A DNA stretch of 64,000 nucleotides, from assembly GCF_009834535.1 (NCBI RefSeq), contig NC_045717.1, forward strand, positions 23,126,001 through 23,190,000, in the 5' to 3' direction. This document shows, piece after piece, positions 356-62,850 of this stretch (positions within the stretch are counted from its first letter, which is position 1; each line of letters starts with the position of its first letter). Source of the DNA: Camelus ferus. Lineage: Eukaryota. The notes under the pieces are model-generated. The model saw nothing but the letters and a program-made list of their open reading frames with translations, was not told where the DNA came from and did not search any database. The position numbers and the translations under genes were made by a program.

Positions 356-455
356 CAGAGCAGCAGCTGTGGCTTTTGGAGCCAGTTGGCTGGCACAGGG
401 CCCTCCTGGGAAGCTCCCTTCTCCCTCTGCCCCTGCCACACCCGAGAGCTCTCAC

Positions 456-1925
456 CGTGGGCACCAGGAGCCCCTGCAGCATGAGGTCACAGATCTTCTG
501 GCCCCGCCGGGTGCCCCGCTGGGTCTCCTGCCACAGCAGCTGGCCCAGCCCCACGTGGCAGAAGCCGTACTTAGTTGCCATGTTCTTGCACTGTGTCCCT
601 TTGCCGCAGCCGGGACCACCCATCACGAAGATGATCAGGGGGGACTTGAGGATGTCTGCAGTGCCAGGGAAAGAGGGAGGGTGAGGGGTTGGCACCTGGA
701 GGGGCCAGTGGGCACCGAGGCAACTGTGTCCAGGGCTTAGTGTGAGTACTTGGTACACCAGACATAGGTCCACTGGCATACCCACTTTTGCCCTAGGGTG
801 GCATCCAGAGGTGCGTGTCCACACCCAGCAGTGTATCCAGGCAATCCATGCTTTAGTGCTGCTGAGGGTTGTGTGGATGAGGATGTGAAACTGAGCAGGC
901 CAGGCCCCTTGCACTCAGCATCTCCTTGAAGCTTCACAATAACCCTATCATCCCATCTTACAGTTGAGGAAACTGAGGCTCAGAGAGGGGCAGGGACTTG
1001 CTCACCCCCTCCAGACTCCTCCCATACCACCCTCCCTTCCTTTACTGCATTCCAGTCCCAGTGGCCTCCTTTCTGTCCCTTGAACTTGCCAAACTCATCC
1101 CTCCCCTACTGTCCCTCCTCATCCTGGCAAGTCCCCACCGCAGTTCTTTCAGGTCTCAGCTCACCCATCATGTCTTCTCTAAGCTCTGTCTAAAGAGCCT
1201 TCCTCCTCATCATTCCTAGTCTCAGAATCCCATTCCCTCCACAGCAATGGCCACACTCAGTGATGATTTTGCCTATTTACTTATTCTTGTCTCCCCAGCC
1301 AGACTGTATACTCCATGAAGACAAGGACTATTTGTCTTCCTTGTCCCTATGTTTCCACTAGTTGGCAGGTTTTCAGACATATAGTAGTCGGCGAGGAATA
1401 CCTGAATGTCCACAACTAGCAGACGCATCTATGGGGTGCTGTAGTTTATGGTGTGATTTTGGCGTCTTGCTTCCCTCCCCCTTTGCTTAGTCAACTTCTA
1501 GTTTACACCTTCCCTCTTCCCTGAGCCCTCAGAGCCACCTGCTCTTTCCCTGCGGCAGCCCTCAGTGGCACCCGGTTCCTCCTGGTTTGTAGATCTCGTT
1601 TTCTGAGGCTGTCTCTTCCACCACACTGTAATCTCCAAGCTGGTCTGCCCCATTCACCGTGAACTGCCTAGAACCCAGCACAGCGGGTGCTCAAGCGGAT
1701 CAGTGAATGGCTGATCCTGAGCATGCGCAGTTGTGTTACTACCACAGTTTGGGAGGAGGAGCGTGTGCACCCTTGGACTTGGTGGGTGGAGTACCTGTAC
1801 TTCTCTCCTGCCCTCCACAGCCTCCTTCCCTTCCCCCCAGTAAGCCAGCCACCCGCGATGTTACCCTTCTCCTGGGGCCTCAGAGGCCTGCCCATCTGGG
1901 GCAGCTTGGACTTGCACAGACCCAT
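456..1925 (-). CDS. Adenylate kinase AK1/AK5-like protein, 5' part only. Exon 1 CDS 1925-1865 (alternative donor gives 1925-1853) and exon 2 655-456. The gene continues off the left edge. It probably corresponds to the human LOC390877 locus.
   Basis: Exon 655-456 (200 nt) has a polypyrimidine tract + CAG acceptor and an ACG|GTGAG donor. It encodes ILKSPLIIFVMGGPGCGKGTQCKNMATKYGFCHVGLGQLLWQE...GLLVPT, with the AK P-loop GGPGxGKGTQC and no indels versus AK1. Upstream ATG at 1925 has strong Kozak context (GGCGGG-ATG-G), reads MGLCKSKLPQMGRPLRPQEK and ends in a phase-1 donor (G|GTAAC) matching the phase-1 acceptor. Exon 1 is less certain than exon 2, and gene versus pseudogene status cannot be settled without the 3' exons. 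Confidence 0.75.
1040..1410. mobile_element. L2 LINE remnant
   Basis: CAGTGGCCTCCTTTCTGTCCCTTGAAC...TCAGGTCTCAGCTCA...GACTGTA motifs typical of L2 3' regions. Confidence 0.55.
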
Positions 1926-2079
1926 CCCGCCAGCCTCCCGTGGGGTGATCGCATCCCAACCCCACCCCGGCCCTGACCCCTCCTGGCTCGGTTCAACGTC
2001 ACAAGGGCCCCTGGCCCGATCATTTGGCGAAATGATGGCGTCCTCCCGGGGCAGAGGAAAGAAATGAACCCCAAAGAAG

Positions 2080-2800
2080 CTCAGGTGGAGCCGCAGCGGT
2101 TTAGTGTGAAGAGGGCCTCGGTTGCTGTGGTAACGCGGCCTGCTTGGACTCACTTCCGGAGTGGAGTGGCGTGGCGCATGCGCACGGCGCTGGAGCCCGC
2201 GGGAAGGGCTAGTTTCTCCCTCTCCTCCCAGGATGCCCGGTTGCCCTTACGTGAGACGTCACGGGGAGGGCGTTCCCACACGTCGTGATCGAGTTATCGG
2301 CGCTATATTTTGCAGTCAGCCAGAGCGCCGGCCGTAGACGGCGCTGCCTTTAGCTCAGGGTCGGCCTCGGCGACGCTGCTAGCCGGAGAGTTTCGCTTGG
2401 CTTCCAGTTTAGGCGACGGCGCAGGCGCAGACGTGGCGGGAGACGCCTCGGAGGCTGACCGCTGACCCAGCGCCGCTCCCAGATAGCTTTTCCCAGGATC
2501 GGCAGCATCCCAGTCTTACGGTCCTCGATCGTGCCCGGAGACCCGACACCTCGAGGGCGGCTTCCGCGGGACGGAGGGACGCGGACCCCGCAGAAGGCGA
2601 AAAGGACCAGGATCGGACCGGACCCCGACCATCGCCCATCTCCCATGGCAGCTCTCGTATGTATGAGGCGAGGCGGTTCTGGGGTCCCGGCGGCGGCCTC
2701 TGTAGCCCCTCACCATCCTGCGTTCTGTCTCCTCAGGGCTCCAGCGGCCAGAATGTCACCGAGTATGTCGTCCGAGTTCCCAAGTAAGTCCCTGACCCTA
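2080..2800. promoter_or_regulatory. CpG-island bidirectional promoter shared by GTF2F1 and the AK-like gene
   Basis: CpG-rich and TATA-less. It contains an X-box GTTGCTGTGGTAAC (2121-2134), ETS/GABP ACTTCCGG (2152-2159), NRF1 GCGCATGCGCA (2174-2184) and a CRE-like ACGTCA near 2256. The two ATGs are 720 bp apart. Confidence 0.85.
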
Positions 2801-5800: not shown

Positions 5801-8800
5801 GTGTAACCATCCCCACCATCATTTCCAGAACTTTCTTATCTTCCTGAAGTGAAACTCTGTCGCCATGAAACACTCACTCCCCCTCCCCCTCCCCAGCCCC
5901 TGGCCCCCACCGTCTACTTACTGTCTCTATGAATCTGACTCTTGTAGGGACCTCGCATGAGTGGAACCAGACACTAGTTGTCGGTTTTTGTCTGGCTTGT
6001 TTCACTGAGCATCGTGTTTTCAAGGCTCATCCACATTGTAATGTGTATCAGTGCTTCATTCCTTTTTTTTTTTTAATTTTATAGTAAAGAGGATGTCAAA
6101 TTTATCATCTTAACCATTTTTAGGTGTACCATTCAGTAATATTAAGTACATTAACATTTTTGTGAAACAGAGCTTCATTCCTGTTTTTTCTCTTCCAGTT
6201 TTATGGAGATGTAATTGACATACAGCCTAAGTTTAAGGCGCACTGCATTAATGATTTCATTTACCTCCATCATGAAATGATCACCACCGTAGATTTAGTA
6301 AACATCCATCATCTCATAGAGATACAAAATTACAAAAATAGACATATATTTTTCCCTTGTGCTGAGAACTCTGAGGGTTTACTCTCAGTAACTTTTATAT
6401 ATAACACGCAAGAGTGGTAATTAATAGTATTAATCGTTAGTACCGATTTATCTTATAACTGGAAGTTTGTACCTTTAAACTACCTTCATCCAGTTCCTCC
6501 TCCTCCCACCTCTGGTGACCACAAATCTGATCTCTTTTTCTGTCAGTTTGGGTGTTTGTTTTTTGAAGTATAATTGACTTCCAACACTGCATTAGTTCCT
6601 GGAGTCCAACATGGTGATTCGATATTTCTCTGCATTTCAAAATGATCTCCAGGATAAGCCTAGGTGCCATCTGTCACCACACAAAAATATTACATCATCG
6701 TTGACTGTATGTACGCTTCACCCCCGTGACATTCATTTTGCAGCTGAGAGTTGTACCTCTTAATCTCCCTCACCTATTTCACCCATCCCCCACGCCTCTC
6801 CCCTTTGGCAACCGCTTGTTTATTCCTTGGATCTGTGACTGTTTCTGTTTTGTNNNNNNNNNNNNNNNNNNNNNNNNNNNNNNNNNNNNNNNNNNNNNNN
6901 NNNNNNNNNNNNNNNNNNNNNNNNNNNNNNNNNNNNNNNNNNNNNNNNNNNNNNNNNNNNNNNNNNNNNNNNNNNNNNNNNNNNNNTTTTGAGTTAGTGC
7001 TTTTGTTTTCTTCGGAAAGATATGCAGAAGTGGGATTTTGGCTGGTATGGTGGTTTTAATTTGGGGGGTGGGTAATTAGGTTTATTTATTTTTAGAGGAG
7101 GTTCTGGGGATTGAAACTAGGACCTCATGCATGCTAAGCATGTGCTCTATACTGAGCTATATCCTCTGCCCACTAGTTTTAATTTTTTTGAGGAGCCTCC
7201 ATACTGTTTTGTATGTAAATTGTATGTAAAATTTNNNNNNNNNNNNNNNNNNNNNNNNNNNNNNNNNNNNNNNNNNNNNNNNNNNNNNNNNNNNNNNNNN
7301 NNNNNNNNNNNNNNNNNNNNNNNNNNNNNNNNNNNNNNNNNNNNNNNNNNNNNNNNNNNNNNNNNNNNNNNNNNNNNNNNNNNNNNNNNNNNNNNNNNNN
7401 NNNNNNNNNNNNNNNNNNNNNNNNNNNNNNNNNNNNNNNNNNNNNNNNNNNNNNNNNNNNNNNNNNNNNNNNNNNNNNNNNNNNNNNNNNNNNNNNNNNN
7501 NNNNNNNNNNNNNNNNNNNNNNNNNNNNNNNNNNNNNNNNNNNNNNNNNNNNNNNNNNNNNNNNNNNNNNNNNNNNNNNNNNNNNNNNNNNNNNNNNNNN
7601 GTCGGTTGTGTTTTTGTTTTGTTAATGGTTTCATTTACTGTGCAAAACTTTTTAGTTTGGTGTAGTCCCATTTGTTTATTTTTGCTTTTGTTTCTCTTGC
7701 CTAAGGAGACAGAGCCAAAAAAAAATTACTAAGACTAATGTCAGAGTGTACTGCCTATGTTTTCTTTTAGAAGTTTTATGGTTTCAGATCTTACATTTAA
7801 GTCTTTGATCCGTTTGTAGTTTATTTTTGTGCATGGTTGAGAGAGTAGTCCAGTTGGATTCTTTCACAGGGAGCTGTCCAGTTTTCTCAACACCACTTAT
7901 TGAAGAGGCTGTCTTTTCCCTGTTGTAGTCTTGCCTCCTCTCATAGATTACTTGACCACAGATGCATGGGTTCATTTTTGGGCTGTCTTCTGTCCCCTTG
8001 GTCTATGTGTCTCTTTTTGTGTCAGTATCATACTGCTTTGATCACTTGTCACATTGTAGTATAATTTGAAATCAGGGTGTGTGATACCTTAGCTTTATTC
8101 TTTTTTCTCAACATTGTTTCGGCTATTTGGGGTTTTTTGTGTTTCCATGTAAATTTCAAAATTATTTGTTACATGAAAAAAGCCATTGGTATTTTGATAG
8201 GGATTGCATCAGCTCTCTAGATTGCCTTAGGTAGTACGGTCATTAACGATACTTTTCCATTTGTTTGTGTCATCTTCAGTTTCTTATAGTTTTCTGAGTA
8301 CAGGTCTTTTACCTCCTTGGTTAGATTCATTCCTAGGTATTTTATGCTTTTGGATGCAACTGTAAATGGATTGTTTTCTTGATTTCCCTTTCTGATAGTT
8401 TGTTGTTACTGTATAGAAATGCAACAGATTTCTGTATATTAATTTTGTATCCTGCAGCTTTGTAGAATTCATTTATTCTAATTGTTTTTTGGTGGCACCT
8501 TTAGGATTTTCTATATATGTAGTATCATGTCATCTGCAAACAATTTTATTTCTTCCATTCCAATTCAGCTTCCTTTCTTTTTTTATTTTTTTCTTGTCTG
8601 ATTGGTGAGGCTAGGACTTCCAACACTATGTTGACTAGAGCTTCATTACTGTTTATATGAATATAAATGAATTCTGCTCCTGTTGTTGGATACAATCCTA
8701 AGGTGCTCTCTAAATGCAATCACATTTTTAAAAACTTTCATCACCACACTAAATGGAAACACTAATCCCTTGGCATTAAAAAGAAGGCATCCATAAACTA

Positions 8801-11316: not shown

Positions 11317-13897
11317 CGTGCTCTGTTCGCTGGATCCTCATCCTCTGGCTCCTGATTCCGCCCGCTCGCCCCCAGGCTGAGGGGCCCCTGCTGCTTTCTC
11401 CTCGGTTTACTTCTCCCTCTCTCCAGTCCCTCCTTTCTGGAACCTTTAGATGCCTCTTGGAACTTGCCCATCTGTTTGCCCCTCTGCCTTGTCCACCGAG
11501 CCTCTCCTGGGTGATTTCTTTCCGCTCTGTCTTCCACTTGGCCAGCTCTCTCTTCAGCTGTGGCTTACCCACCACTTAAACCATGAAGTACTTAGTTTAT
11601 TCTTTTTCAGACCAGCCGGTCTGTTTTCTGTCTAGCTGCTTCCGTTCTTGAACCCGTCTTTGGCATTTTTTACCTTAAGCGTCCCTGTCTTAAAGTCTCC
11701 CCCACACTCATGCAGTACCTAAGGCTCGCAGGCACCCCGTATCCTGACTCCTCCTTCCGATTGATTCTCGTGTTTTGTTATCTGGGATGGGGGACTCATG
11801 GGTGGTCTGCTTTGCAGGCAAGTCCTTCCAAATAGTTTTTGCCTGTGCTCCCCCTGGGTGCCCCCGAAGTCCTGTCCTGTCCTGAGCCCATTTTAGGTGT
11901 GGTTCTCAGCTTGTGGCTCTGTCCCTAGGTGGCCACAAAATCCCAAACCCCTCTGTGGCTGATGTTGGCTTCTAGGCCCTATTTTTCAACTTTCCAGTGA
12001 TGTTTCTGGGGTTTTCCTTAGATTCTCACTGGTTAGTTAGGCATTCATTTTATGCAGCATTGCTAGGTGTTCTGCAGCGGGGGCGGGGGGCTTTTTTGAG
12101 TTCATGGACAGTCACATTGCTAGAAGTGTAATTTGGCAGCAGGCACTACTTTTGAGCCCCCATTTGAGTGATCCGGTGGGGGGCAGGATGTTGGGCTTCT
12201 GTCTTGCCCAAGCTGGAGACTGCAGGTGGAAAACTTTCCCACCCAGTTCTACCGGCCCTTGGCTGCTGAGCGGGGATGCCTGAGATGTCAGACTAATTCC
12301 TTGGAATGTCCCAGGTCGATCCAACCTCCCTCCCCATCCTTCCGCCAGGCCTTTTGGGACAGCTGGAAAGAGTGCTTGCCCCTTGCCCTAGCAATTTCGC
12401 CCCTGTCCTGTTTACCACGTGCACTGGGGTCTAAGGCCTCCCTACTGGGTGCGCCACACAGCCCAGTGGTCCAGAGCAGGGGACTTGCATTCAGTGGGAT
12501 CCAGGGTCAAATACCGCCTGTGCTGCTTAATTCTGGGTGACTCTGGGTAAGTAACACCCCTGGGGCCCCCATCCCCACCCCGTCTGAAAGTAGTCTGTAA
12601 GCAGTAAAGTATGAACCACACCAAAATCGTTGAAGCAGTCCCCAGTGGGTGTAGGTGAGGTCATTTCCAGTCTCTCGCTGATACAAAAGGCAGCAAACAT
12701 CCCTGAGCTTGCGTCTTCGCTCTCCTGGGTAGGATGAGTTCCTGAAGCAGGCTTTCTGGGTCCAAGGGATGTGATTTGCAGTTTCTGTAGCAAACATTCA
12801 CCTGCTACTGATTCGCACTCGTACCCGCAGGCATGTCTATGTCACAGACACACACACGCACACACAGCCATGTGGAAGCAAACTTGACGTCTGCCATTTC
12901 TGGGTACAGTCTACTCTGAGTTTAACCCAGTCCCACCTGTATGAGACTGAGCACTTCGCAAACCTACACAAGCTGTTCTTACCTCCTTTGCCTCAAAAGC
13001 TCTTGCAACTCCTTAGCATCAGGCCCCACGTTAAATGCTCAATGCAGCTTCTGTCCTCAGAAGCCCGTGTGGGAGGGACTCTGATTGGCCCCCTTTGACA
13101 GGTGAGGATGGAGGCTCACTTCCCGGGGGTGATGGATTAGGCCGGGGAAGTCACCGGGGCCTGCTGCTGCCTCTGGCCCAGCAGGCCTTACCCTCCCCTC
13201 CAGCTCTGATGCCCTTCAACCCCAGGATAGGGCTCGGGCCCCGGTGAGGGGCTGTTTGGCCTTCGAGCCTGGAGTCCCTGCAGGGGAGCTTCCTGCCCCT
13301 GGTGTCCCAGCTCTTGGCTGTCCCCAGGCCTCTCCCTTTTCCTGTTTTGATGCTGGCTCAGCCAGGCCCGGAGACAGGGGCCTGATGTCTTGATCCTCCA
13401 GGCGGGAGCCGTGATGGATTCCCCGTCAGCTCACCCACCTGCCAACCCGCCTCTTCCCTGCACACATAGCTGCTGCACCTGGCACACTACACACGGGCCA
13501 CTGAGGCCCAGCACCCTGCCTGAGTGCAGAGGGTCCCACCGGGGGACCCACGGAGTCCCTGGCCTCTCCCTCCAGATAGCAGGTCGAATCGGGACCCCGG
13601 TCACCTGCCCTGGGCTTGGCCCTGGCTGCCGCCACACTCGTAAATCAGGGGGCGGAGGGGGTGTCAGAGATCAGTATGTGGAATGTCTGGATGGGGTGTG
13701 TGGGGGGTGTGCACCCTTAACTCTTCGAAGGATGCCGTGTGGGACCGAAGGGGCTGGACCGCCTAGGCCTGAGGTGTGCGACATGGGGGCCTTTGTGCCT
13801 GAGCAGCAACCGGCAGTGAAGAGGTTATCTCCCCTGCTCAGGCAGGGGATAAATTGAGGGTGCAGGGCACCCCCACCCTGAGGACCTGCCCGTCACC

Positions 13898-14438
13898 ATG
13901 GCCACAGGAAGAGTCCTGCTAGGCTCTCTGCTGCTCCTGATCCTGCAGCTGGACCTTGGGGGGAACCCTGGAACCTCGGGTGCTCCGGTGGAGGATGAGG
14001 GGCTCCTGTCCCAGCCAGTGGGCGACAGAGGAACCCAGAGGCCACAGCTGGGTAAGGACCCCCAGAACCCCATGTGCCCTCCAAATCCTGCCTGGACACT
14101 GCCTGCTGTCAGCTGCCCCTTGTCCTGCAGGCACTCGCTTGCGCAGGGCCCCGGCCAGCCCGTGCCAGCTGTGGAGCCTGTCCCTGCCTGTGGCTGAGCT
14201 GGGCCTGGGCTACACGTCGGAGGAGACCGTCATCTTCCGCTACTGCGCCGGCAGCTGTCCCCACGGAGCCCGCACCCAGCACGGCTTGACGCTGGCCTGG
14301 CTGCGGGGCCAGGGCCGAGCCCACGGCGGGCCCTGCTGCCGACCCACCCGCTACGCTGACGTGGCCTTCCTGGACGACCGCCACCGCTGGCAGCGGCTGC
14401 CCCAGCTCTCAGCGGCAGCCTGTGGCTGCGGAGGCTGA
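13898..14438 (+). CDS. PSPN: Persephin (GDNF-family neurotrophic factor) precursor, 153 aa. Exons 13898-14051 and 14131-14438.
   Basis: Signal peptide MATGRVLLGSLLLLILQL, RLRR furin site, and cystine-knot mature domain CQLWSL...LGLGY...FRYCAGSC...PCCRPTRY...LPQLSAAACGCGG*. The 79-nt GT-AG intron has matching phase 1. Confidence 0.96.
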
Positions 14439-14557
14439 GCGTGCCCGGCCCGGGGCCCTGCAGCCCCTGGAGGAGCTCTGCTGACTTACTTTACTGGAGA
14501 CTTAGATGCCAAGAAAACGAAAGGGTGATGTGGGCTGGGGCCACCAACAAGGAGCTC

Positions 14558-14563
14558 AATAAA
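14558..14563 (+). terminator. AATAAA poly(A) signal of PSPN
   Basis: First canonical hexamer after the PSPN stop (about 120 nt downstream). Confidence 0.75.
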
Positions 14564-14706
14564 GGAAACTGCTCCCTCCACCTCATGCTGTGTGTTCAGC
14601 CCGGGATGCTCCCGGTGGGTAGCCAGGTGAGGTCCTGGGTTTCCCTGCAGGTCCCAGCCCCTGCACATAGCTAGTGCCAGGAAGGCCAGCTTGTCCATCC
14701 TCTAAC

Positions 14707-14755: not shown

Positions 14756-16321
14756 TCAGCAGGCTGGGGGCGGCTGCCTGGGCTCTGCTGGCCCCATCCT
14801 CTCAGGAAGGGAGCGGCAGATCACGGAGATGCGTCGGCCCCGGGGAACCCGACGCTCCCCGAAAAAGGACTCTTCATCTCGAAGGATCTCGTGGGAGAAG
14901 TCATAGCGGGCTGAGCCTCTGCAAGAGAAAATAGGCTGTGGTGGGTGGGGTGAGGGCAGTCCCTGTTTCAGGCAGACTGTGGGTAGTTTGCTGGGAGGGC
15001 TGGATGAGAAAAGGTGCTCAAAGTGCTGGGGTGGGTATGTCTCACGAGTTACCAGTGGGGTTGGGGCTCCTTGGCTGCCAGTACCTAAGGATGTAGAGGG
15101 AGCCTGGCTCCAGCAAGAGTTCCAGCCACTCCCCTGGCTCCTGGGTGTGCACCAGCCGCATGACGCTGGAAGACAGCAGAGACAGGCCGGCAATGGTGGA
15201 CCCACAGAACTGGAAGAGGGGACACGGTGGCAAGTCAGGGTTTGGCCTGGCTGGCTCACCCACAGCCAGGAGCTCTAAGGCATTGGCCCCTGCCCACCTT
15301 GATGCTGTCCACGTGTGGTTTGATGTAGCCCCGAGGTTCCAGGTCCAGCACATGCACCGGGGACAGCAGGGTCTGGCCAGGGCCAAAGGCAGCCGCCTGC
15401 ACACGCTGTAGGATGGCCCGGCTTGCTTCTGACCAGCGCGACTTCTCTGTCTCGCGGAAGCCATGGATGGCCTGCCCAGAGGGCTCAGGTCAAGCCTAGA
15501 AGCTCCCAGGGGGCCAGGGAAACTGAGGCACAGTGCGGGGGCGGGGGGGGGGAGTGAGTTGCCAAAGTGCAAAGCAAAGGGCTGTTATTTCCAGCATGAT
15601 ACTTGACCCCACCTTCAACTCACAACCTTGGTCCTATCTACCCCATGATCCTGGGTCTCAAACCCCAACCTCTGCCCTATCTAGGTCTGGCCTCAGTCCT
15701 TTGTGCCCACCATCAGGCTCTAATTCAGTCTCAGATCCCGTCCCCAATGCTGGTCTGGCTACAATATTCACAACTCGATCCCACTCAACACCAGGCCCCC
15801 AGTCTGCATCCCCAAACCGTGACCCCCCTCATCTCTTCTCCATACACGTTTCTGCCCCTAACTTTGGTCTTGTCCCTCCAAACACCCCTAATTTCCAGGT
15901 TCTGCCTCCAGTTATGGCCCTGACCTCATCTCCGAAGTGTTCTCCATGCCCCCAAGGTTCCCAAGCTTAAAGACTCCGTCCCCACCAAGGTCCCGTCCCC
16001 AGCCTTAGCCCCGCCCACCAAACACTCCACTCCCCGCCCCCCCGGGTCTCCGCCCCCGGGTCTCCGCCCCCGGGTCCCCGCCCCGTCGCAGCACCACCAC
16101 TAGCACCACGGCCTCACCGCATCCCAGTGATCATATTCGTATCGGCGGCGGCGCAGCTGGGGTTCCAGCTCACGGCTCAGCGTCTCCTCCTCGGCCGCGC
16201 TCAGGAAGCCGGGCCGCACCACGGCCGCGTCCCGCAGGCGGCTCAGCACAGCCGGGCCCGAGCCCCGTACCCAGCCCTGCCTGGGAAGCGTCCCCAGAGC
16301 CAGTCGCCCACTCCCGGCCAT
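14756..16321 (-). CDS. ALKBH7: AlkB homolog 7, mitochondrial Fe(II)/2-oxoglutarate dioxygenase, 221 aa. Exons 16321-16118, 15471-15298, 15209-15085, 14918-14756.
   Basis: The spliced CDS is 666 nt with GT-AG introns. It has an Arg-rich presequence, [21 protein letters not shown], the HxD motif (KPHVDS), distal His (DFSHEIL) and RRISVICR. Confidence 0.97.
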
Positions 16322-16600
16322 ATTCCTGGGGCCGGCTCGTGGAAGGGGCCGGAGTCAGGGCAACGCCCCCCCCCGAACTATTGGCACAGCCGGGCCCGAG
16401 TCCCTCCAGCGATTGGCTTTTCTCAGACTCCCGCCTCTCGCTCAAGACCACTGGTTGTTACTCGAATCGTTCTCTCAAGCTATTGGTCCTCCCCAGAGCC
16501 CGCCTCCTCTTCCGTGCTATTGGGCGTCTTCGACCGTAGCTTCTCAGACTATTGGCTAAGCTGCAAGTCAGTCCTTCGAGGGCGAGGGCACGCTCTGGCT
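16030..16600 (-). promoter_or_regulatory. ALKBH7 CpG island/promoter with phased CCAAT boxes
   Basis: CpG-rich. ATTGG on + strand at 16380, 16412, 16482, 16519 and 16551, plus ACTGG at 16450. Confidence 0.8.
16032..16085. repeat. 14-bp GC-rich minisatellite (CCGCCCCCGGGTCT)x~3.5 in ALKBH7 intron 1
   Basis: CGGGTC recurs at 16043, 16057 and 16071. Confidence 0.85.
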
Positions 16601-16999: not shown

Positions 17000-17560
17000 G
17001 TCATACACCAAGTTACTGGAAATCCCAAAGCCAAGATCCAATCATCAAAATCCAGACAATGAGAAAGTCCACAAGACAAATGACCCTGTTTCTCCAACAA
17101 GTGAGTTCCAAGGAAAGAGAAGAAAAAGAGGGAGAGATTGAGAGGTTAAGGGGAAACCAGCAGTTACCAGACACTTCGGGATCTGTCAGCCAGTGACAAG
17201 TATGCACCTTATTTGGATCCTGATTGGAACAAACTAAAAAAACACAAAATAGAGCCAACGGGGGAAATTTGGACACTGGTTGAATATTTGACCACGGTAA
17301 GTGTTGTCATTTTGCAGGGTTTGAAAATGGCACTGTGGTTGTATTTTTAGATTCCTTATCCTTTTAGAACTCCATACTGAAATATTTATAGATGAAATAA
17401 AAAGCAGGTAATGGGGCCAGAAGAGGGGAAGGGGGGTACAAATCACAATCAGTAGTGAATTGATAATTGTTGAATTGGTGTGGTGGGTTCCTGAGACCTC
17501 ATTTTCCTAGTCTCTCTGCTTTTGTATATATTTAAAATTGTGCAGACTGAAAAGTTCAGC
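17000..17560 (+). mobile_element. Old L1 (L1MC/ME-like) 3' remnant
   Basis: AAATTTGGACACTGGTTGAATATTTGA...GCACTGTGGTTGT...GAAATATTTATAGATGAAAT motifs. Confidence 0.6.
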
Positions 17561-17769
17561 CAAATGCAACCAATGAATGAAGCCAAATTTTAAAATCCTC
17601 TGAAATTAAAAAAACAAAAAAATTGACCTCCACTCTCCCTCCAGCAACAGCCACATGTGTTCTCTGCTCCCAACAACAAAATTCCTCGAAAAGACTTGTC
17701 TAGTTCCAATGTTTTCCCGCCCCTTCTCTCTGGGTCCACTCCAATCTGTCTTTTTGTGCCCACAGCACC

Positions 17770-18730
17770 AAAAGTGATCTGTTCAAGGCCACTAGTGACT
17801 TCCAGTGTGCCAAATGTCACAGCCACTTCTCAGCCTGGCCGCTAATTCAGCGACAGGCTGAAGTCTCCTACGTTTTTATTCCTAGCCCTGACCCGACTTT
17901 CCCATCCTCTGGGATGGCTGAGGCACAGCAGGTGTCAAATGTCACACGTGCAAAACCAGCTCCTCATCCCAGACCCCCATCCTGCTCCTCCCCCTACCTC
18001 TCCTGTTTCAGTTATGGGGAAATCTCATCTTTCCATCTTTCTCATGGCTTTGGGCCGACATCTTGGGAATTTTTGGAGATTATTTTCTCTCTCAAGTCTT
18101 ACATTCCACCTGTCAGCCATGCCTTTAAAGCCTGGCTAGAATCTGACCTCACCACCTGGTCAGGGCCATCAGCCTTCCTCTGGATTATTCTAAGTCTCCT
18201 CCCAGGTCTCCAGGGTTCTGGGCTTGCCACCACTCTGTGGTTCCTTTTTGTCCCTTTTCTCGAAATCCTCCATGGTGCATCTCTCTCCTTGGTAAGACCT
18301 GCCAGGCTTTTTATGATCTGTACTCCTCCCTTTTCCGCTCTCACCTCCTCCACTGCACCCCCCCCCCCCCACTCACTGACTCACTCACTCCAGCCACCCT
18401 GTGGTTCCTCCCATGTGTCAGCCACATCCTGCCACAGGGCCTTTGCACTCACTGTGTCCTCTGCCTGGACTGCTCTGCCCCCAGATAGCAAGCTGCGCCC
18501 CACCCTCCCCAACCTCCTTCAGGTCTTTGCTCAAATGTCACCTTTTCAGCAAGGCCACAGGCTACCCCATCTGAAACTGTCACACACATGTACACACTGC
18601 ATACCTCTTTCCCTGACTGTTTTTTTAAACTGTATACTCCCATAAGAAGGTAAGTTTCAGGACAGGGATTTTTATGTTTTCTTCATAATATGTTGTGGCC
18701 TCTGGAGCAGTGCCTGGAATGTCGCATATG
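17770..18730. mobile_element. L2 LINE remnant
   Basis: CCACAGGGCCTTTGCACTCACTGTGTCCTCTGCCTGGA...GCTCAAATGTCACCTT...GCAGTGCCTGGAATGT hallmark L2 sequence. Confidence 0.7.
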
Positions 18731-18856
18731 CTCAGCAGAGTTTGCTGACATTAGGACGCTGAAGGTCAATGTGACAGCAGAGGCCGGGTGGAGCACACAG
18801 GCGCAGCGGAGGAGAGGGGGGGCAGGCGCCGCAGATGGGAGCAAAGACTACAAATA

Positions 18857-18862
18857 TTTAAT
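18857..18862 (-). terminator. ATTAAA poly(A) signal of CLPP
   Basis: TTTAAT on + strand about 155 nt after the CLPP stop, in an AT-rich patch at the end of a GC-rich UTR. Confidence 0.65.
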
Positions 18863-19017
18863 TTAAAAATCACAGTGTCTCAGCCAGGATGCCCACCCGG
18901 AGGGACACCCCTCAAATCCAGAGTTCCTCAAAGGGGCCCCTCGAGGCCCAGTGGTGAGGGGCGGGAAGGGCTGGCGCCTGGCCCCTCTGCTTCCCTCTAG
19001 AGGGTGAGGACCAGCTC

Positions 19018-23530
<4,513 letters not shown>

Positions 23531-32164: not shown

Positions 32165-32770
32165 GTTTATCACTTCCTCATTTTTTATTGCAGTAAAAAC
32201 ATACAACATGAAATTTGTCATCTTAACAATTTTCAAGTGCACAGCTCAGTGGCATTAAGCACATGCACCCTGTTGTGCAGCCATCTCCACCGTCCATCTT
32301 TAGAACTTTCTCATCTTCTCAAACTGAAACTCTGTCCCCATCAAACATAATGCTCCCTCCCCCTCCGCTAGTCCCTGGGCCTCACCGTCCTACCTTCTGT
32401 CTCTATGAATTTGACTCCTCTAGGGACCTCCTCTATGTGGAATCATACAATAGTTCCTTCCATAACTGACTTATCACTGAGTGTAGCATCCNNNNNNNNN
32501 NNNNNNNNNNNNNNNNNNNNNNNNNNNNNNNNNNNNNNNNNNNNNNNNNNNNNNNNNNNNNNNNNNNNNNNNNNNNNNNNNNNNNNNNNNNNNNNNNNNN
32601 NNNNNNNNNNNNNNNNNNNNNNNNNNNNNNNNNNNNNNNNNNNNNNNNNNNNNNNNNNNNGTGTACAAGTATCTTTTTGAGTCCTTGCTCTCAATTCTTT
32701 TGGGCAGATACCTAGGAGTGAAATCACTGCATCACATGGTAATTCTATTTCTAACTTTTTGAGGAACGCC
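32165..32770 (-). mobile_element. L1MB-like 3' end (contains an N gap)
   Basis: AACATGAAATTTGTCATCTTAAC...CAGTGGCATTAAGCAC...GAACTTTCTCATCTTCTCAAACTGAAACTCTG. Confidence 0.8.
32492..32660. other. Assembly gap (N run)
   Basis: Ns inside L1. Confidence 1.
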
Positions 32771-33629: not shown

Positions 33630-33762
33630 NNNNNNNNNNNNNNNNNNNNNNNNNNNNNNNNNNNNNNNNNNNNNNNNNNNNNNNNNNNNNNNNNNNNNNN
33701 NNNNNNNNNNNNNNNNNNNNNNNNNNNNNNNNNNNNNNNNNNNNNNNNNNNNNNNNNNNNNN
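33630..33762. other. Assembly gap (N run)
   Basis: Ns inside MLT1. Confidence 1.
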
Positions 33763-54400: not shown

Positions 54401-57400
54401 TCCCTGGGAAGTTGTGTTGACCCTCCTGAGTCCCTTGGGATCCTTTCCTAAACTCACCTGGGAGTCTTAAGACCTTTTTCAGAGCCCAGTTTGGCTCCTT
54501 GTAGCCCTTTCCCTTTTCTCATCCATCTTTGCCCCAAGATCTCCATGGGACCCTGCCTAAACCCCACAGGAACTCCCCTCCACCGCCCCCAACAGCTGAG
54601 CCCTTCTCTCCCCAGGCTGCAGTTCGTCTGCCTGGTCTGTATCACCACCATTGTCAGCACCTTCCTGTCCTTCCTGAAGCCCACGATCAACGCATACGCC
54701 CTCAACAGCATTGCCGTGCACGTGTTCTACATCGTGTTCCAGGAGTACAAGAAGTGGGTGGTGGCTGCAGGTGCCCGGGGAGGTGGCTCCCTTCCCCACT
54801 CCAACAACCTCCCTTCACCCAGTACTCACCCTGTTCCCAAAATAGTTATTGACTTCAGGCTCATGGGGACAATGTCCTTTCCCCAAGATCATTCACCAAC
54901 TAAGAGCAGGACCAGGATTTGAACCGAAGGCTGTCTGACTGCAGAGTTCATCCCTTTTGTTGCAAACCCCCCAAACATACATACAAGTAGAGAGCATTGC
55001 ATCAGAAACCTCCATGTGTGCCACTAACCAGCCCGCACAACCGTTAGCACTTTGCCAACCTGCATTCTGTATTCCCCCCAGATTTCATGTAATGTCACCC
55101 ATTCGTTGTTCAGGATTTCACTCTCCTGATACAGAATTATTTTTTTTTCATTTTTATTTTTGTTTGTTATTGAAGTGTAGTCAATTTACAATGTTAGTTT
55201 CAAGTATACAGCAAAGTGATTCAGTTATACATACATATATATTTTCAGTTTCTTAAAAATGGCTCATTACAGGAATTGAATATAGTTCCCTGTGCTGTAT
55301 GTAGAATTATCTTTAACCCATGCTAGGTCTTAGCAGGCTAGAGAGGGGACTTTCAAATGGAGCTGTTTGAGGAGAGTTGAATAAAAGGGTTATTTACAAA
55401 GGAGAGGGAAGACTGTCGTAAACTCACTAGGGATCCTTTAGAAACCCTGTGCTAATAAGGATGGGTTTCTGTGATCATCAGGAGACCTGAGATGGGAAGC
55501 AATGGGAGGGAGTGATTGCACGAATCTGGAAGAAGAGAGCTAGCAGGGAGGGTCTCCTTGGCAAGAGCTGTGACCTCTAGTTGTTGGTTCCCTCCAGCCT
55601 GAGCCAACCCCACAGGGAGGTTGTGTGGACCAAACCCAGGGGCCCCCTTGTCCTTGGTCTTCTAGTTGGGTTGACCAGTGGTTTCCAGCTGGGTTAGCCA
55701 ATGGTTTCCAGTTGGGTTGGCCAATGGTTTCCAGTTGGGTTGGCCAATGAGGAGCCTCAAGTGGGAACCAAAGGGTGAGGGGAGGGAACTGTTAGAATAT
55801 ATATTTCCAAGTCCACATAGCTCACCCGCCCCCCCATCCCCTGAGGTGTGAGGCAGAGTGGAGAAAGGTAGGAAAGGATCCAGACGGGCAAGTGGAAGAC
55901 CTGGCACACACACGTCTCACAAGGTTAATGATCCTTCCCTAGAATAGCGTCTAATACTCAGTTTGCACTGACCTTTCATCAGTTTCCCAAAGGCATCTTT
56001 TTATACCTGGACTTGTTTAAATCAGAATGCAAACACAGTCTTAGATCATCTTTATTTCACAGCATCCTTCCCTCCTTCCCTTCCCCTTTCTTCATGCCTC
56101 TGACTTTTTAAAATTGAAGTATAGTCCGTTGCAATGTGTCAATTTCTAGTGTACAGCATAATGTTTCAGTCATACATATATATACATGTATTCGTTTTCA
56201 TATTCTTTTTCATTATAGGTTACAAGATATTGAATATAGTTTCCTGTGCTATACAGAAGAAATTTGGGTTTTTTAATCTATTCTATATAGTGGTTAATAT
56301 TTGCAAATCTCAAACTCCCAATTTATCTCTTTCCACCCTCTTTCCCCCTGGTAACCATAGGTTTGTTTTCTATGTCTATGAGTCTGTTTCTGTTTTGTAA
56401 GTAAGTCCATGTAGGTCTTTTTTTTTTTTTTTAGATTCCACATATAAGTGATATCATATGGAATTTTTCTTTCTCTTTCTGGCTTACTGAATTCANNNNN
56501 NNNNNNNNNNNNNNNNNNNNNNNNNNNNNNNNNNNNNNNNNNNNNNNNNNNNNNNNNNNNNNNNNNNNNNNNNNNNNNNNNNNNNNNNNNNNNNNNNNNN
56601 NNNNNNNNNNNNNNNNNNNNNNNNNNNNNNNNNNNNNNNNNNNNNNNNNTCATGCCTCTGATTTAACCACGGAAACTTGATCATTTGTCTTATAGAACAT
56701 CCTGCATTCTGGATTTGTTTGGCTGCTTCCTGTGGTGCCTCTCAATGTGTTTCCTTATTTTTTCTTTTATTTTTGATATTTCCTACAAATTAATAGATCT
56801 ACATTTATGCTTAATTTTTTTTTCATTTTATGCATGGTGCTGAGTTCTGCTTGTTCCACCCCATTAAGATCCTCCCCCCATAATGAGTGATTGTCCCACA
56901 TTTAGTGCCATTAAGTTTGATTAGTGGATTTGGATGGTGTCATCCAGACCCTTCATTATAGAGTTTTCTACTGACCCTTTCACCTGATGATTCCAGTGGC
57001 CATTTCATGCTGTCTCCATCCATGATCTCATTAGAGGGGGCAAAGTGGTGGTTTTCAGATTCTGTTATTCCTTCTGCATTGATTGATGATGATCTGGCTT
57101 TCATCTATCCTGACAGAAGGACTGTCACTCATCAACCTTGAAGTACGATTTGGACAGGACATACAGGATAGAGCATTGATTCTTTCCCTTTTAAAACTCA
57201 ATTTCCAAAGAATATTAAAATGAATATATGCATGTATATGCATGACTGAGACATTATGCTGTACACCAGAAATTAACACATTGTAACTGACTGTACTTCA
57301 ATTAAAAAAAAAACCCTCTATTTCCAGAGTAAGGGTTTGGTACCTTAGCCATCACTAAGAAGGACCAATGAAGTTGTTTTTTCTTTAAGTAGTATTATGA

Positions 57401-62069: not shown

Positions 62070-62850
62070 GAAAAGTACACACTCCAGGAGGATGTGAAAT
62101 GGTGCTCAGCATCGTCAGTCATTAGGGAAACGCAAATCAGAACCATGGATACCATCTCACAGCCACTAAATTGGCCATATATATTTTTTAAAGGCAGAGT
62201 ACAATTGCTGATGAGAATGAAGAGAAATTGGAACCCTTGTGCGTCACTAGGAATATAAAATGGTGCGGCTGTGATGGAAAAGAGTTTGGCGGTTCCTTAA
62301 CAAGTTAAACATAGAGTCACCATGTGATCCCGCAATTCCACTTCCAGGCACATACCCCAAAGAATTGAAAACAGGTATTCAAGAAAATACTTGTACAGAA
62401 ATGTTCATTTGCAGCACTATTGATAAGAGCCAAAGGGTGGAGACAACCTAAATGTCCACCAATGGATAAACAAAATGTGGTCCAGCCATACGATGGAATA
62501 CTGTTCAGCCTTAAAGGGCAGTGAAGCACTGACACACACTGCAGCGTGGATAACCCTGNNNNNNNNNNNNNNNNNNNNNNNNNNNNNNNNNNNNNNNNNN
62601 NNNNNNNNNNNNNNNNNNNNNNNNNNNNNNNNNNNNNNNNNNNNNNNNNNNNNNNNNNNNNNNNNNNNNNNNNNNNNNNNNNNNNNNNNNNNNNNNNTGG
62701 GTATAGAATTTCCTTTGGGGGTGAAAAATGTGTCTTGGAAAACTGGATAGAAGTGCTGGCTGCACAACACTGGGAATGTTCTAGAAGCCTCTGAATTGTG
62801 CACTTTAATATGGTTAATGGTTAGTTTTATGTTATGTGAAATTTTTTTCA
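62070..62850 (+). mobile_element. L1MB-like 3' end (contains an N gap)
   Basis: GAGAAATTGGAACCCTTGTGC...TAAACATAGAGTCACCATGTGATCCCGCAATTCCACTTC...GTGCACTTTAATATGGTTAA. Confidence 0.88.
62559..62697. other. Assembly gap (N run)
   Basis: Ns inside L1. Confidence 1.

Follow-up and report, generated by a model that had tools for sequence, protein, structure and literature searches.

A conserved adenylate kinase paralogue with a predicted lipid-anchoring leader and its probably impaired copy in Camelus ferus

Does the Camelus ferus genome encode, next to a CpG island on contig NC_045717.1 (assembly GCF_009834535.1), a membrane-tethered adenylate kinase (AK) that differs from the AKs already named, and would such an enzyme still be active in this animal? 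The question is raised by two short exons lying on the minus strand near the left edge of a 64,000-nucleotide stretch (positions 23,126,001 to 23,190,000 of the contig, hereafter the window). With a probability of roughly 0.72, we read positions 456-1925 as carrying coding exons 1 and 2 of the Camelus copy of an ancient vertebrate AK paralogue, which we call AK1L for want of a formal name; its intact copies would be lipid-anchored kinases, the camel copy being probably impaired. The parts of the gene that fall within the window are the following (in splice junctions, the slash separates exon from intron):

1865..1925, minus strand: AK1L coding exon 1, 61 nt (ATG, 20 codons and 1 nt), translated as MGLCKSKLPQMGRPLRPQEK from the ATG at 1925
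1863..1864, minus strand: GT donor of intron 1, AGG/gtaaca, phase 1; AGG/gtaa is kept in dromedary, hippo, rabbit, hare and degu
656..1862, minus strand: rest of intron 1, ending in ctgcag (about 1.2 kb with the donor included)
456..655, minus strand: AK1L coding exon 2, 200 nt, phase 1 in and phase 0 out
594..620, minus strand: P-loop GGPGCGKGT for ATP phosphate binding, intact
531..533, minus strand: Trp codon TGG in place of the Arg that binds the AMP phosphate (AK1 Arg44); CGG in dromedary and hippo, a CpG transition
454..455, minus strand: GT donor of intron 2, ACG/gtgaga

An earlier reading made from the sequence alone had proposed that the ATG at 1925 stands in a strong Kozak context, and both the coordinates and the translation agree with this, the start being embedded in ggcgggATGG with G at -3 and at +4. 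Exon 2, bounded by the acceptor ctgcag/AC and the donor ACG/gtgaga, encodes (D)ILKSPLIIFVMGGPGCGKGTQC...LLVPT (full reading (D)ILKSPLIIFVMGGPGCGKGTQCKNMATKYGFCHVGLGQLLWQETQRGTRRGQKICDLMLQGLLVPT) and covers the P-loop together with the first half of the nucleoside monophosphate (NMP)-binding domain of adenylate kinase. Taken by itself, it matches the Pfam family ADK (PF00406) with E = 1.2e-15 (58.4 bits for a cut-off of 26.8), finds AK1 (about 4e-17) and AK5 (6e-15) among the solved structures, and is 98% identical to the dromedary proteins XP_031294075 and KAB1259188. The proposals that a phase-1 donor joins the leader in frame to a clean 200-nt AK exon, and that this exon is one phase-1/phase-0 unit, were borne out in the window as well as in other species. 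Indeed, the 61-nt and 200-nt exons, their phases and their AGG/gtaa and cag/A. boundaries recur at the dromedary, hippo, rabbit, hare, degu, echidna and turtle loci, and since the same arrangement is found in seven other species, the junction of exon 1 with exon 2 is not fortuitous. The alternative donor suggested at 1853 is used in no orthologue's gene model. The remaining exons, 3-5, are outside the window on its left side; the dromedary locus has exon 3 at 0.5 kb and exon 4 at 11 kb farther along.

The start proposed by the ab initio dromedary model KAB1259188, which corresponds to the minus-strand ATG at 2646 of the window, was rejected: it runs antisense through the start region of GTF2F1, is unsupported elsewhere and bypasses the conserved leader exon. 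Exon 1 of this model, a 98-codon open reading frame (window 2350-2646, minus strand) antisense to the beginning of GTF2F1, appears to be spurious.

How widely the gene occurs was assessed by searching 1.8 billion representative proteins, with exon 2 as the query and then with the full-length rabbit protein. This recovered 143 AK1L-type proteins from eutherians, marsupials, echidna, turtles and Varanus (Komodo dragon), the eutherians including rabbit, hare, pika, rat and other rodents, mouse lemur, manatee, sloth, mole, carnivores, horse, bats, cetaceans, hippo, camelids, monkeys and apes. Intact orthologues, found in many species, are single-domain proteins of 211-212 amino acids. Seven loci were compared at the DNA level (dromedary, echidna, turtle, degu, rabbit, hare and hippo, the hippo stretch being without exons 4-5), and the coding exons measure 61, 200, 114, 195 and 66 nt (the last with the stop in addition), with common phases and GT/AG boundaries across these loci. 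AK1L is divergent, head to head, from the TFIIF-alpha gene (GTF2F1) in dromedary, turtle, degu, rabbit and hare, and convergent, tail to tail, with a KH/FUBP_C gene (KHSRP) in echidna, turtle, degu, rabbit and hare. AK1L is therefore a real gene of five coding exons located between GTF2F1 and KHSRP across amniotes. It is already annotated automatically in dozens of genomes, so that it is unstudied rather than undetected: NCBI uses the label 'adenylate kinase isoenzyme 1-like', some entries wrongly bear the name AK1, AK5, UMP-CMP kinase-like or nucleoside-diphosphate kinase, and Ensembl-derived entries read 'Predicted gene, 17949', which we take to come from the mouse gene symbol Gm17949. Many of the database models are truncated or aberrant. 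An in-frame isoform of 174 amino acids that skips exon 3 (LLVPT/VGRAP), and with it the DGFPR half of the NMP-binding domain, is predicted in numerous species, among them Mus caroli, Chionomys, Otolemur, Dipodomys and Antechinus.

The next question is whether AK1L might simply be AK1 or AK5 under another name. A maximum-likelihood tree built from single AK domains placed all ten AK1L sequences in one clade (support 100/100), and the clade containing AK1 from guinea pig, squirrel monkey, frog and lamprey excluded them. AK1L joined the two AK5 domain clades at 93/93, the branching order among the three not being settled by the tree; these AK5 domains were taken from fish AK5 only, and the grouping is uncertain because the AK5 and AK1L branches are long. 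The AK5-N and AK5-C clades were each recovered at 100/96 or better, with AK1L outside both. Accordingly, AK1L lies neither in the AK1 clade nor at the AK1 locus, and it has neither the two tandem AK domains and Dpy-30-like N-terminus of AK5 nor a position in the AK5 clade. The claim that it is an AK-family member distinct from both is upheld by its own clade and by its own conserved place between GTF2F1 and KHSRP; judged from these sequence comparisons, AK1L is best described as a distinct, uncharacterised AK paralogue.

The likeness to AK1 is nevertheless considerable. Both have the short-type adenylate kinase fold, rabbit AK1L being about 45% identical to mammalian AK1 (BLASTP), and against the protein sequences of the PDB the full-length rabbit protein scores 194 bits with AK1, 178 bits with AK5 and 123 bits with UMP-CMP kinase. 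The P-loop, the equivalents of R44, R97, R132, R138 and R149, and Q101 are kept in intact orthologues, and the introns that follow VP(L or T), ER(R or I) and (K or N) have identical positions and phases in the two genes. Even the leader has a counterpart, as the guinea-pig AK1 leader exon (MGCYSSRDPRSEGDQQAR), which belongs to the beta isoform, ends in phase 1 and joins at the codon position where exon 1 of AK1L meets exon 2. Unlike AK1L, however, guinea-pig AK1 has an extra intron in the P-loop, which divides the equivalent 200 nt into 36 and 164 nt, in agreement with the original suggestion that the exon organisation is not that of AK1. AK1L further differs from AK1 in its separate locus and clade, in having the acylation-type leader as the only start in most models rather than as an alternative first exon, in an NMP loop of the form G or A, L or M, G, then Q, E, D or N (S-T-G-D in AK1), and in evolving faster, with repeated damage in mammalian lineages. 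AK5 belongs to the same short-type family, and its solved domain is the source of the 178-bit match, but AK1L has only one domain, lacks a Dpy-30-like region and carries an acylation-type leader. Two further proteins, P0119 (Lampetra fluviatilis, 560 amino acids) and P0267 (Hyperolius, 'AK1 isoform X3'), combine an AK5-type N-terminal region, made up of a Dpy-30-like part and an AK5-N-like domain, with a C-terminal domain that groups with AK1. This hints either that AK1 derives from the second of two domains in an ancestral protein or that models of neighbouring genes were fused.

AK1L is under purifying selection, leader exon included. The ratio of nonsynonymous to synonymous substitution rates (dN/dS; Nei-Gojobori, NG86) ranged from 0.12 to 0.47 over every pair compared, well below 1, as the earlier reading required; the value for camel and hippo was 0.12-0.15. 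By Fisher test, dN was lower than dS between camel and hippo over exons 1-3 (p = 1.6e-8), between rabbit and hare (p = 0.0012) and between rabbit and degu (p = 5e-9), and in some pairs exon 1 was significant by itself (p = 0.003-0.015).

What the selected product may do is suggested by its residues, which were counted in an alignment of the 143 AK1L-type sequences with three reference rows. Of 132 orthologue sequences, 131 have the P-loop Lys, and the equivalents of R44, R97, R132, R138 and R149, as well as Q101, are mostly kept. The AMP-binding Arg (R62 in AK1L, corresponding to R44 of AK1) is found in 120/144, G111 in 108/116 and P113 in 103/115, while the equivalent of AK1 Thr39 is Leu, Met or Ile in all AK1L. 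Because the catalytic residues are mostly kept, AK1L appears to be a family of active kinases in which the NMP loop has been remodelled. Intact AK1L would then be a short-type NMP kinase catalysing the reaction ATP + AMP = 2 ADP, as the conserved P-loop Lys, LID arginines and adenine-reading Gln lead one to expect. Individual lineages have nonetheless been hit, often by CGG-to-TGG transitions. R44W occurs in cetaceans, one fruit bat, one blind mole rat and the Bactrian camel; gibbons carry R97W, R132Q and R149S; macaques and a mangabey carry R132W; and frameshifted or frame-switched models are seen in elephant, proboscis monkey and green monkey. Lineages with W44 often show other losses at the catalytic site, such as R114Q beside W44 in the right whale.

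The copy in the window belongs to the affected ones. Where dromedary, hippo and rabbit have the phosphate-binding Arg of the motif G-x-L-L-R, the window reads GQLLW, and the same Trp44 is present in the Camelus bactrianus protein P0207. By descent the window copy still belongs to the adenylate kinase family, but whether it is catalytically competent is doubtful. A comparison of exons 1-2 with those of dromedary shows two differences, both nonsynonymous, namely K7N in dromedary and R62W in the window. Farther along, exon 3 of both dromedary and C. bactrianus encodes IDSFRREL instead of the near-invariant IDGFPREL, so that R97 is kept and a Gly and a Pro are replaced; R132, R138 and R149 are present in both species. 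The donor of exon 4 in dromedary is AAC/ataggt, beginning with AT, as compared with AAC/gtaggt in turtle and CAC/gtaggt in rabbit and hare, and the NCBI model for dromedary reads through to a stop. In alpaca, for which protein models were the only source, there is either a frameshift after GFPR or a skipped exon 3. From these sequence changes, the AK1L copy in the C. ferus window is probably impaired or starting to decay, and it seems somewhat better than an even bet that kinase function is impaired in this genome.

Several observations weigh against this assessment. Exons 1-2 of the window contain no stop or frameshift, and their splice sites are canonical. The lesions in exons 3 and 4 were read from dromedary and C. 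bactrianus, outside the window sequence. The P0207 model of C. bactrianus uses a cryptic donor and a cryptic acceptor which keep the frame and insert 14 residues before the last helix. The recurrence of R44W in cetaceans, a fruit bat and a mole rat could mean repeated loss, but it could also mean that this Arg is less essential in AK1L. Finally, polarised counts over exons 1-3 gave no excess of replacements on the camel branch (5 nonsynonymous and 8 synonymous changes, against 4 and 6 for hippo). Relaxed selection on that branch was consequently discarded as evidence of decay, and since there is no such excess, the argument for decay rests on the kind of changes and not on their rate.

The strongest alternative is that the camel gene is fully functional, in which case Trp44, the DSFRR motif and the rescued exon 4/exon 5 junction would reflect a changed substrate preference or a non-catalytic role at the membrane as a pseudoenzyme or scaffold. 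The intact first exons, the low camel-hippo dN/dS with its unremarkable camel branch, and the frame-preserving junction modelled in C. bactrianus would all fit, as would the maintenance of the identical Arg-to-Trp replacement across whales and dolphins. Yet the residues that have changed are near-invariant in both AK1L and AK1 (see the counts for R62, G111 and P113 above), alpaca has lesions of its own, and W44 lineages such as the right whale tend to lose other catalytic sites too. Moreover, in AK1 structures the loop that holds the adenine of ATP is located beside the site equivalent to the modelled 14-residue insertion, so that the inserted residues would adjoin it. We regard a fully functional camel gene as unlikely, although it is the best-placed competitor of the impaired copy favoured here.

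If intact AK1L is a kinase, is it held at membranes? The M-G-x-C-x-S leader is kept from turtles (MGLCQARLPK) and echidna (MGLCQPKLAK) to eutherians, as the sequence-only reading required. The search for orthologue leaders, which returned 35 distinct ones, required an MG start, so that Cys4 and Ser6 count as independent evidence and MG does not. The conserved positions are:

Leader position 3: Leu in 30/35 distinct orthologue leaders
Leader position 4: Cys in 29/35
Leader position 6: Ser in 33/35, with Ala in the other 2
Leader position 8: Leu in 33/35
Leader position 9: Pro in 33/35
Leader position 15: Leu in 35/35
Leader position 17: Pro in 34/35

The fit to the N-myristoyltransferase consensus that had been noticed is confirmed by inspection, as GLCKSK of the window matches the PROSITE N-myristoylation pattern G-{EDRKHPFYW}-x(2)-[STAGCN]-{P}. 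Dual-acylation leaders of the SH4 type, found in Src-family kinases (for example MGCIKSK), in G-alpha-i/o and in AKAP18-alpha, resemble the MGLCKSK of AK1L in their Met-Gly start, small or uncharged third residue, nearby Cys, Ser6 and flanking lysines. They differ from it in having the Cys at position 3 instead of 4, and the remainder of the AK1L leader, LPQMGRPLRPQEK, is conserved and does not resemble SH4 domains. Within the kinase family itself, AK1-beta is reported to be myristoylated and bound to the plasma membrane (PMC2680645). The AK1-beta proteins P0275, P0277 and P0249 carry an MGCC leader, so the parallel drawn earlier with this isoform is a sound one. AK1-like proteins from other eukaryotes, P0245 (the invertebrate Mya arenaria) and P0055 (a metagenomic eukaryote), begin with MGNLC or MGICGS, and for this reason acylation-type leaders may be old and widespread in the family. 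By analogy, Gly2 of the 20-residue leader would be myristoylated by N-myristoyltransferase and Cys4 palmitoylated, and the acyl groups, together with Lys5 and Lys7, would hold AK1L on membranes in the manner reported for AK1-beta. Lipid anchoring of AK1L is, in our view, a well-founded prediction. The stronger description of the camel protein as a constitutively lipid-anchored kinase may not hold, given R44W, DSFRR and the lost donor.

The predicted anchor, too, has points against it. For the camel gene, the start codon, the usage of exon 1 and the acylation are themselves predictions; Arg3 of marsupials and Pro6 of echidna fit the N-myristoyltransferase pattern poorly; six of the 35 leaders are without Cys4; and conservation extends beyond what acylation needs, to L8, P9, G12, R13, L15, R16, P17, E19 and K20. 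The sequence upstream of the start has to be considered as well:

1880..2023, minus strand: possible upstream open reading frame, with out-of-frame ATGs at 2023 and 1954 in one frame, ending at 1880 and overlapping the main ATG

If the transcript starts upstream of both, these ATGs could dampen translation of AK1L; gibbon gene models begin at the ATG equivalent to the out-of-frame upstream one. On the minus strand of the window, no in-frame ATG precedes 1925 back to the stop at about 2247.

Such observations open a second alternative, according to which the MGLC leader has no part in lipid anchoring and is kept as a binding motif (PxxP-type or another) or for translational control, or the protein starts elsewhere. 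The far-reaching conservation, the marsupial and echidna residues that break the N-myristoyltransferase rules, the upstream out-of-frame ATGs of the window and the in-frame upstream starts in the models for dog, mink, macaque and horseshoe bat would be accounted for in this way. It is still less likely than a functional camel gene: the leader of the window matches the pattern and shares Ser6 and Lys7 with the SH4 segments of Src-family kinases, Cys4 and Ser6 recur at the frequencies given above, the camel sequence offers no in-frame upstream ATG, and the sister enzyme AK1-beta does use an acylated leader. A chance reading frame or dead fragment, that is, a piece of a processed or duplicated AK1 pseudogene behind a fortuitous ATG, might be suspected from the presence of only two exons in the window and from the many truncated or aberrant models, but it can be dismissed in view of the introns, the synteny and splice sites conserved for more than 300 million years, dN/dS well below 1, the intact 211-212-amino-acid orthologues and the tree.

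The preferred reading, an ancient paralogue with an acylation-type leader, invites speculation on its origin. In the human genome, AK1 lies near FUBP3 (9q34.11), AK5 near FUBP1 (1p31.1) and AK1L beside KHSRP/FUBP2 (19p13.3). These positions suggest that AK1, AK5 and AK1L may be copies left by the genome duplications of early vertebrates. AK1L would then be the third survivor of the AK1/AK5 family, distinguished by an acylated leader as its sole start and repeatedly discarded, and the leader exon would predate the split of AK1 and AK1L; we hold this scenario tentatively, at slightly less than even odds. It would imply that the acylated leader exon survives in AK1 as the beta isoform, that most mammals have a dedicated membrane-tethered nucleotide kinase, and that loss in apes, Old World monkeys, cetaceans and camelids explains the absence of the gene from the AK1-AK9 nomenclature. 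Reviews of mammalian adenylate kinases treat AK1-AK9, and in the literature library searched, no relevant paper was found for AK1L under its database names or obvious aliases. AK1L thus appears to be a further conserved member of the AK family, predicted by automated pipelines and apparently unstudied.

Should its leader be lipidated, AK1L would be an adenylate kinase whose default form is membrane-bound, which bears on the local handling of ATP, ADP and AMP at membranes, a role proposed for AK1-beta. Its patchy loss among mammals, probably including this camel, provides a natural experiment on when such an enzyme becomes dispensable. It also calls for caution in transferring the annotation 'adenylate kinase' to copies that have lost catalytic residues. 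The contribution of the window by itself is modest, consisting of two intact exons of a probably impaired copy.

Upstream of the AK1L start, the window continues as follows:

1926..2645, no strand assigned: head-to-head intergenic region shared with GTF2F1, with a CpG island (observed/expected CpG 0.89)

The GTF2F1 ATG lies at 2646 on the plus strand, 721 bp from the AK1L start, and the region between is presumably a bidirectional promoter of the two genes. Three motifs were spotted there by eye on the plus strand: CTTCCGG (ETS-like, 2153-2159), GCGCATGCGC (an NRF1-like palindrome, 2174-2183) and GACGTCA (CRE-like, 2255-2261). Motifs of these three kinds are typical of housekeeping bidirectional promoters. 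On the minus strand, introns 1 and 2 contain at about 930-985 and 318-345 the sequences cagtttcctcaactgtaagatggg and ctcaactgtaaaatggg, respectively, which look like cores of the short interspersed element MIR.

Six runs of N, 1094 bases in total, interrupt the window (6854-6986, 7235-7600, 32492-32660, 33630-33762, 56496-56649 and 62559-62697), none of them inside the AK1L exon and intron region 456-1925. The first 12 kb are 99.1-99.5% identical to a dromedary chromosome, while in coding details the closest agreement of the window is with Camelus bactrianus. The other genes of the window are GTF2F1, PSPN, ALKBH7 and CLPP, in an order that agrees with that of human 19p13.3. Open reading stretches were noted for PSPN at about 13850-14700 (plus strand), in the region expected for ALKBH7 at about 15000-16500 (minus strand) and for CLPP at about 17000-23500 (minus strand).

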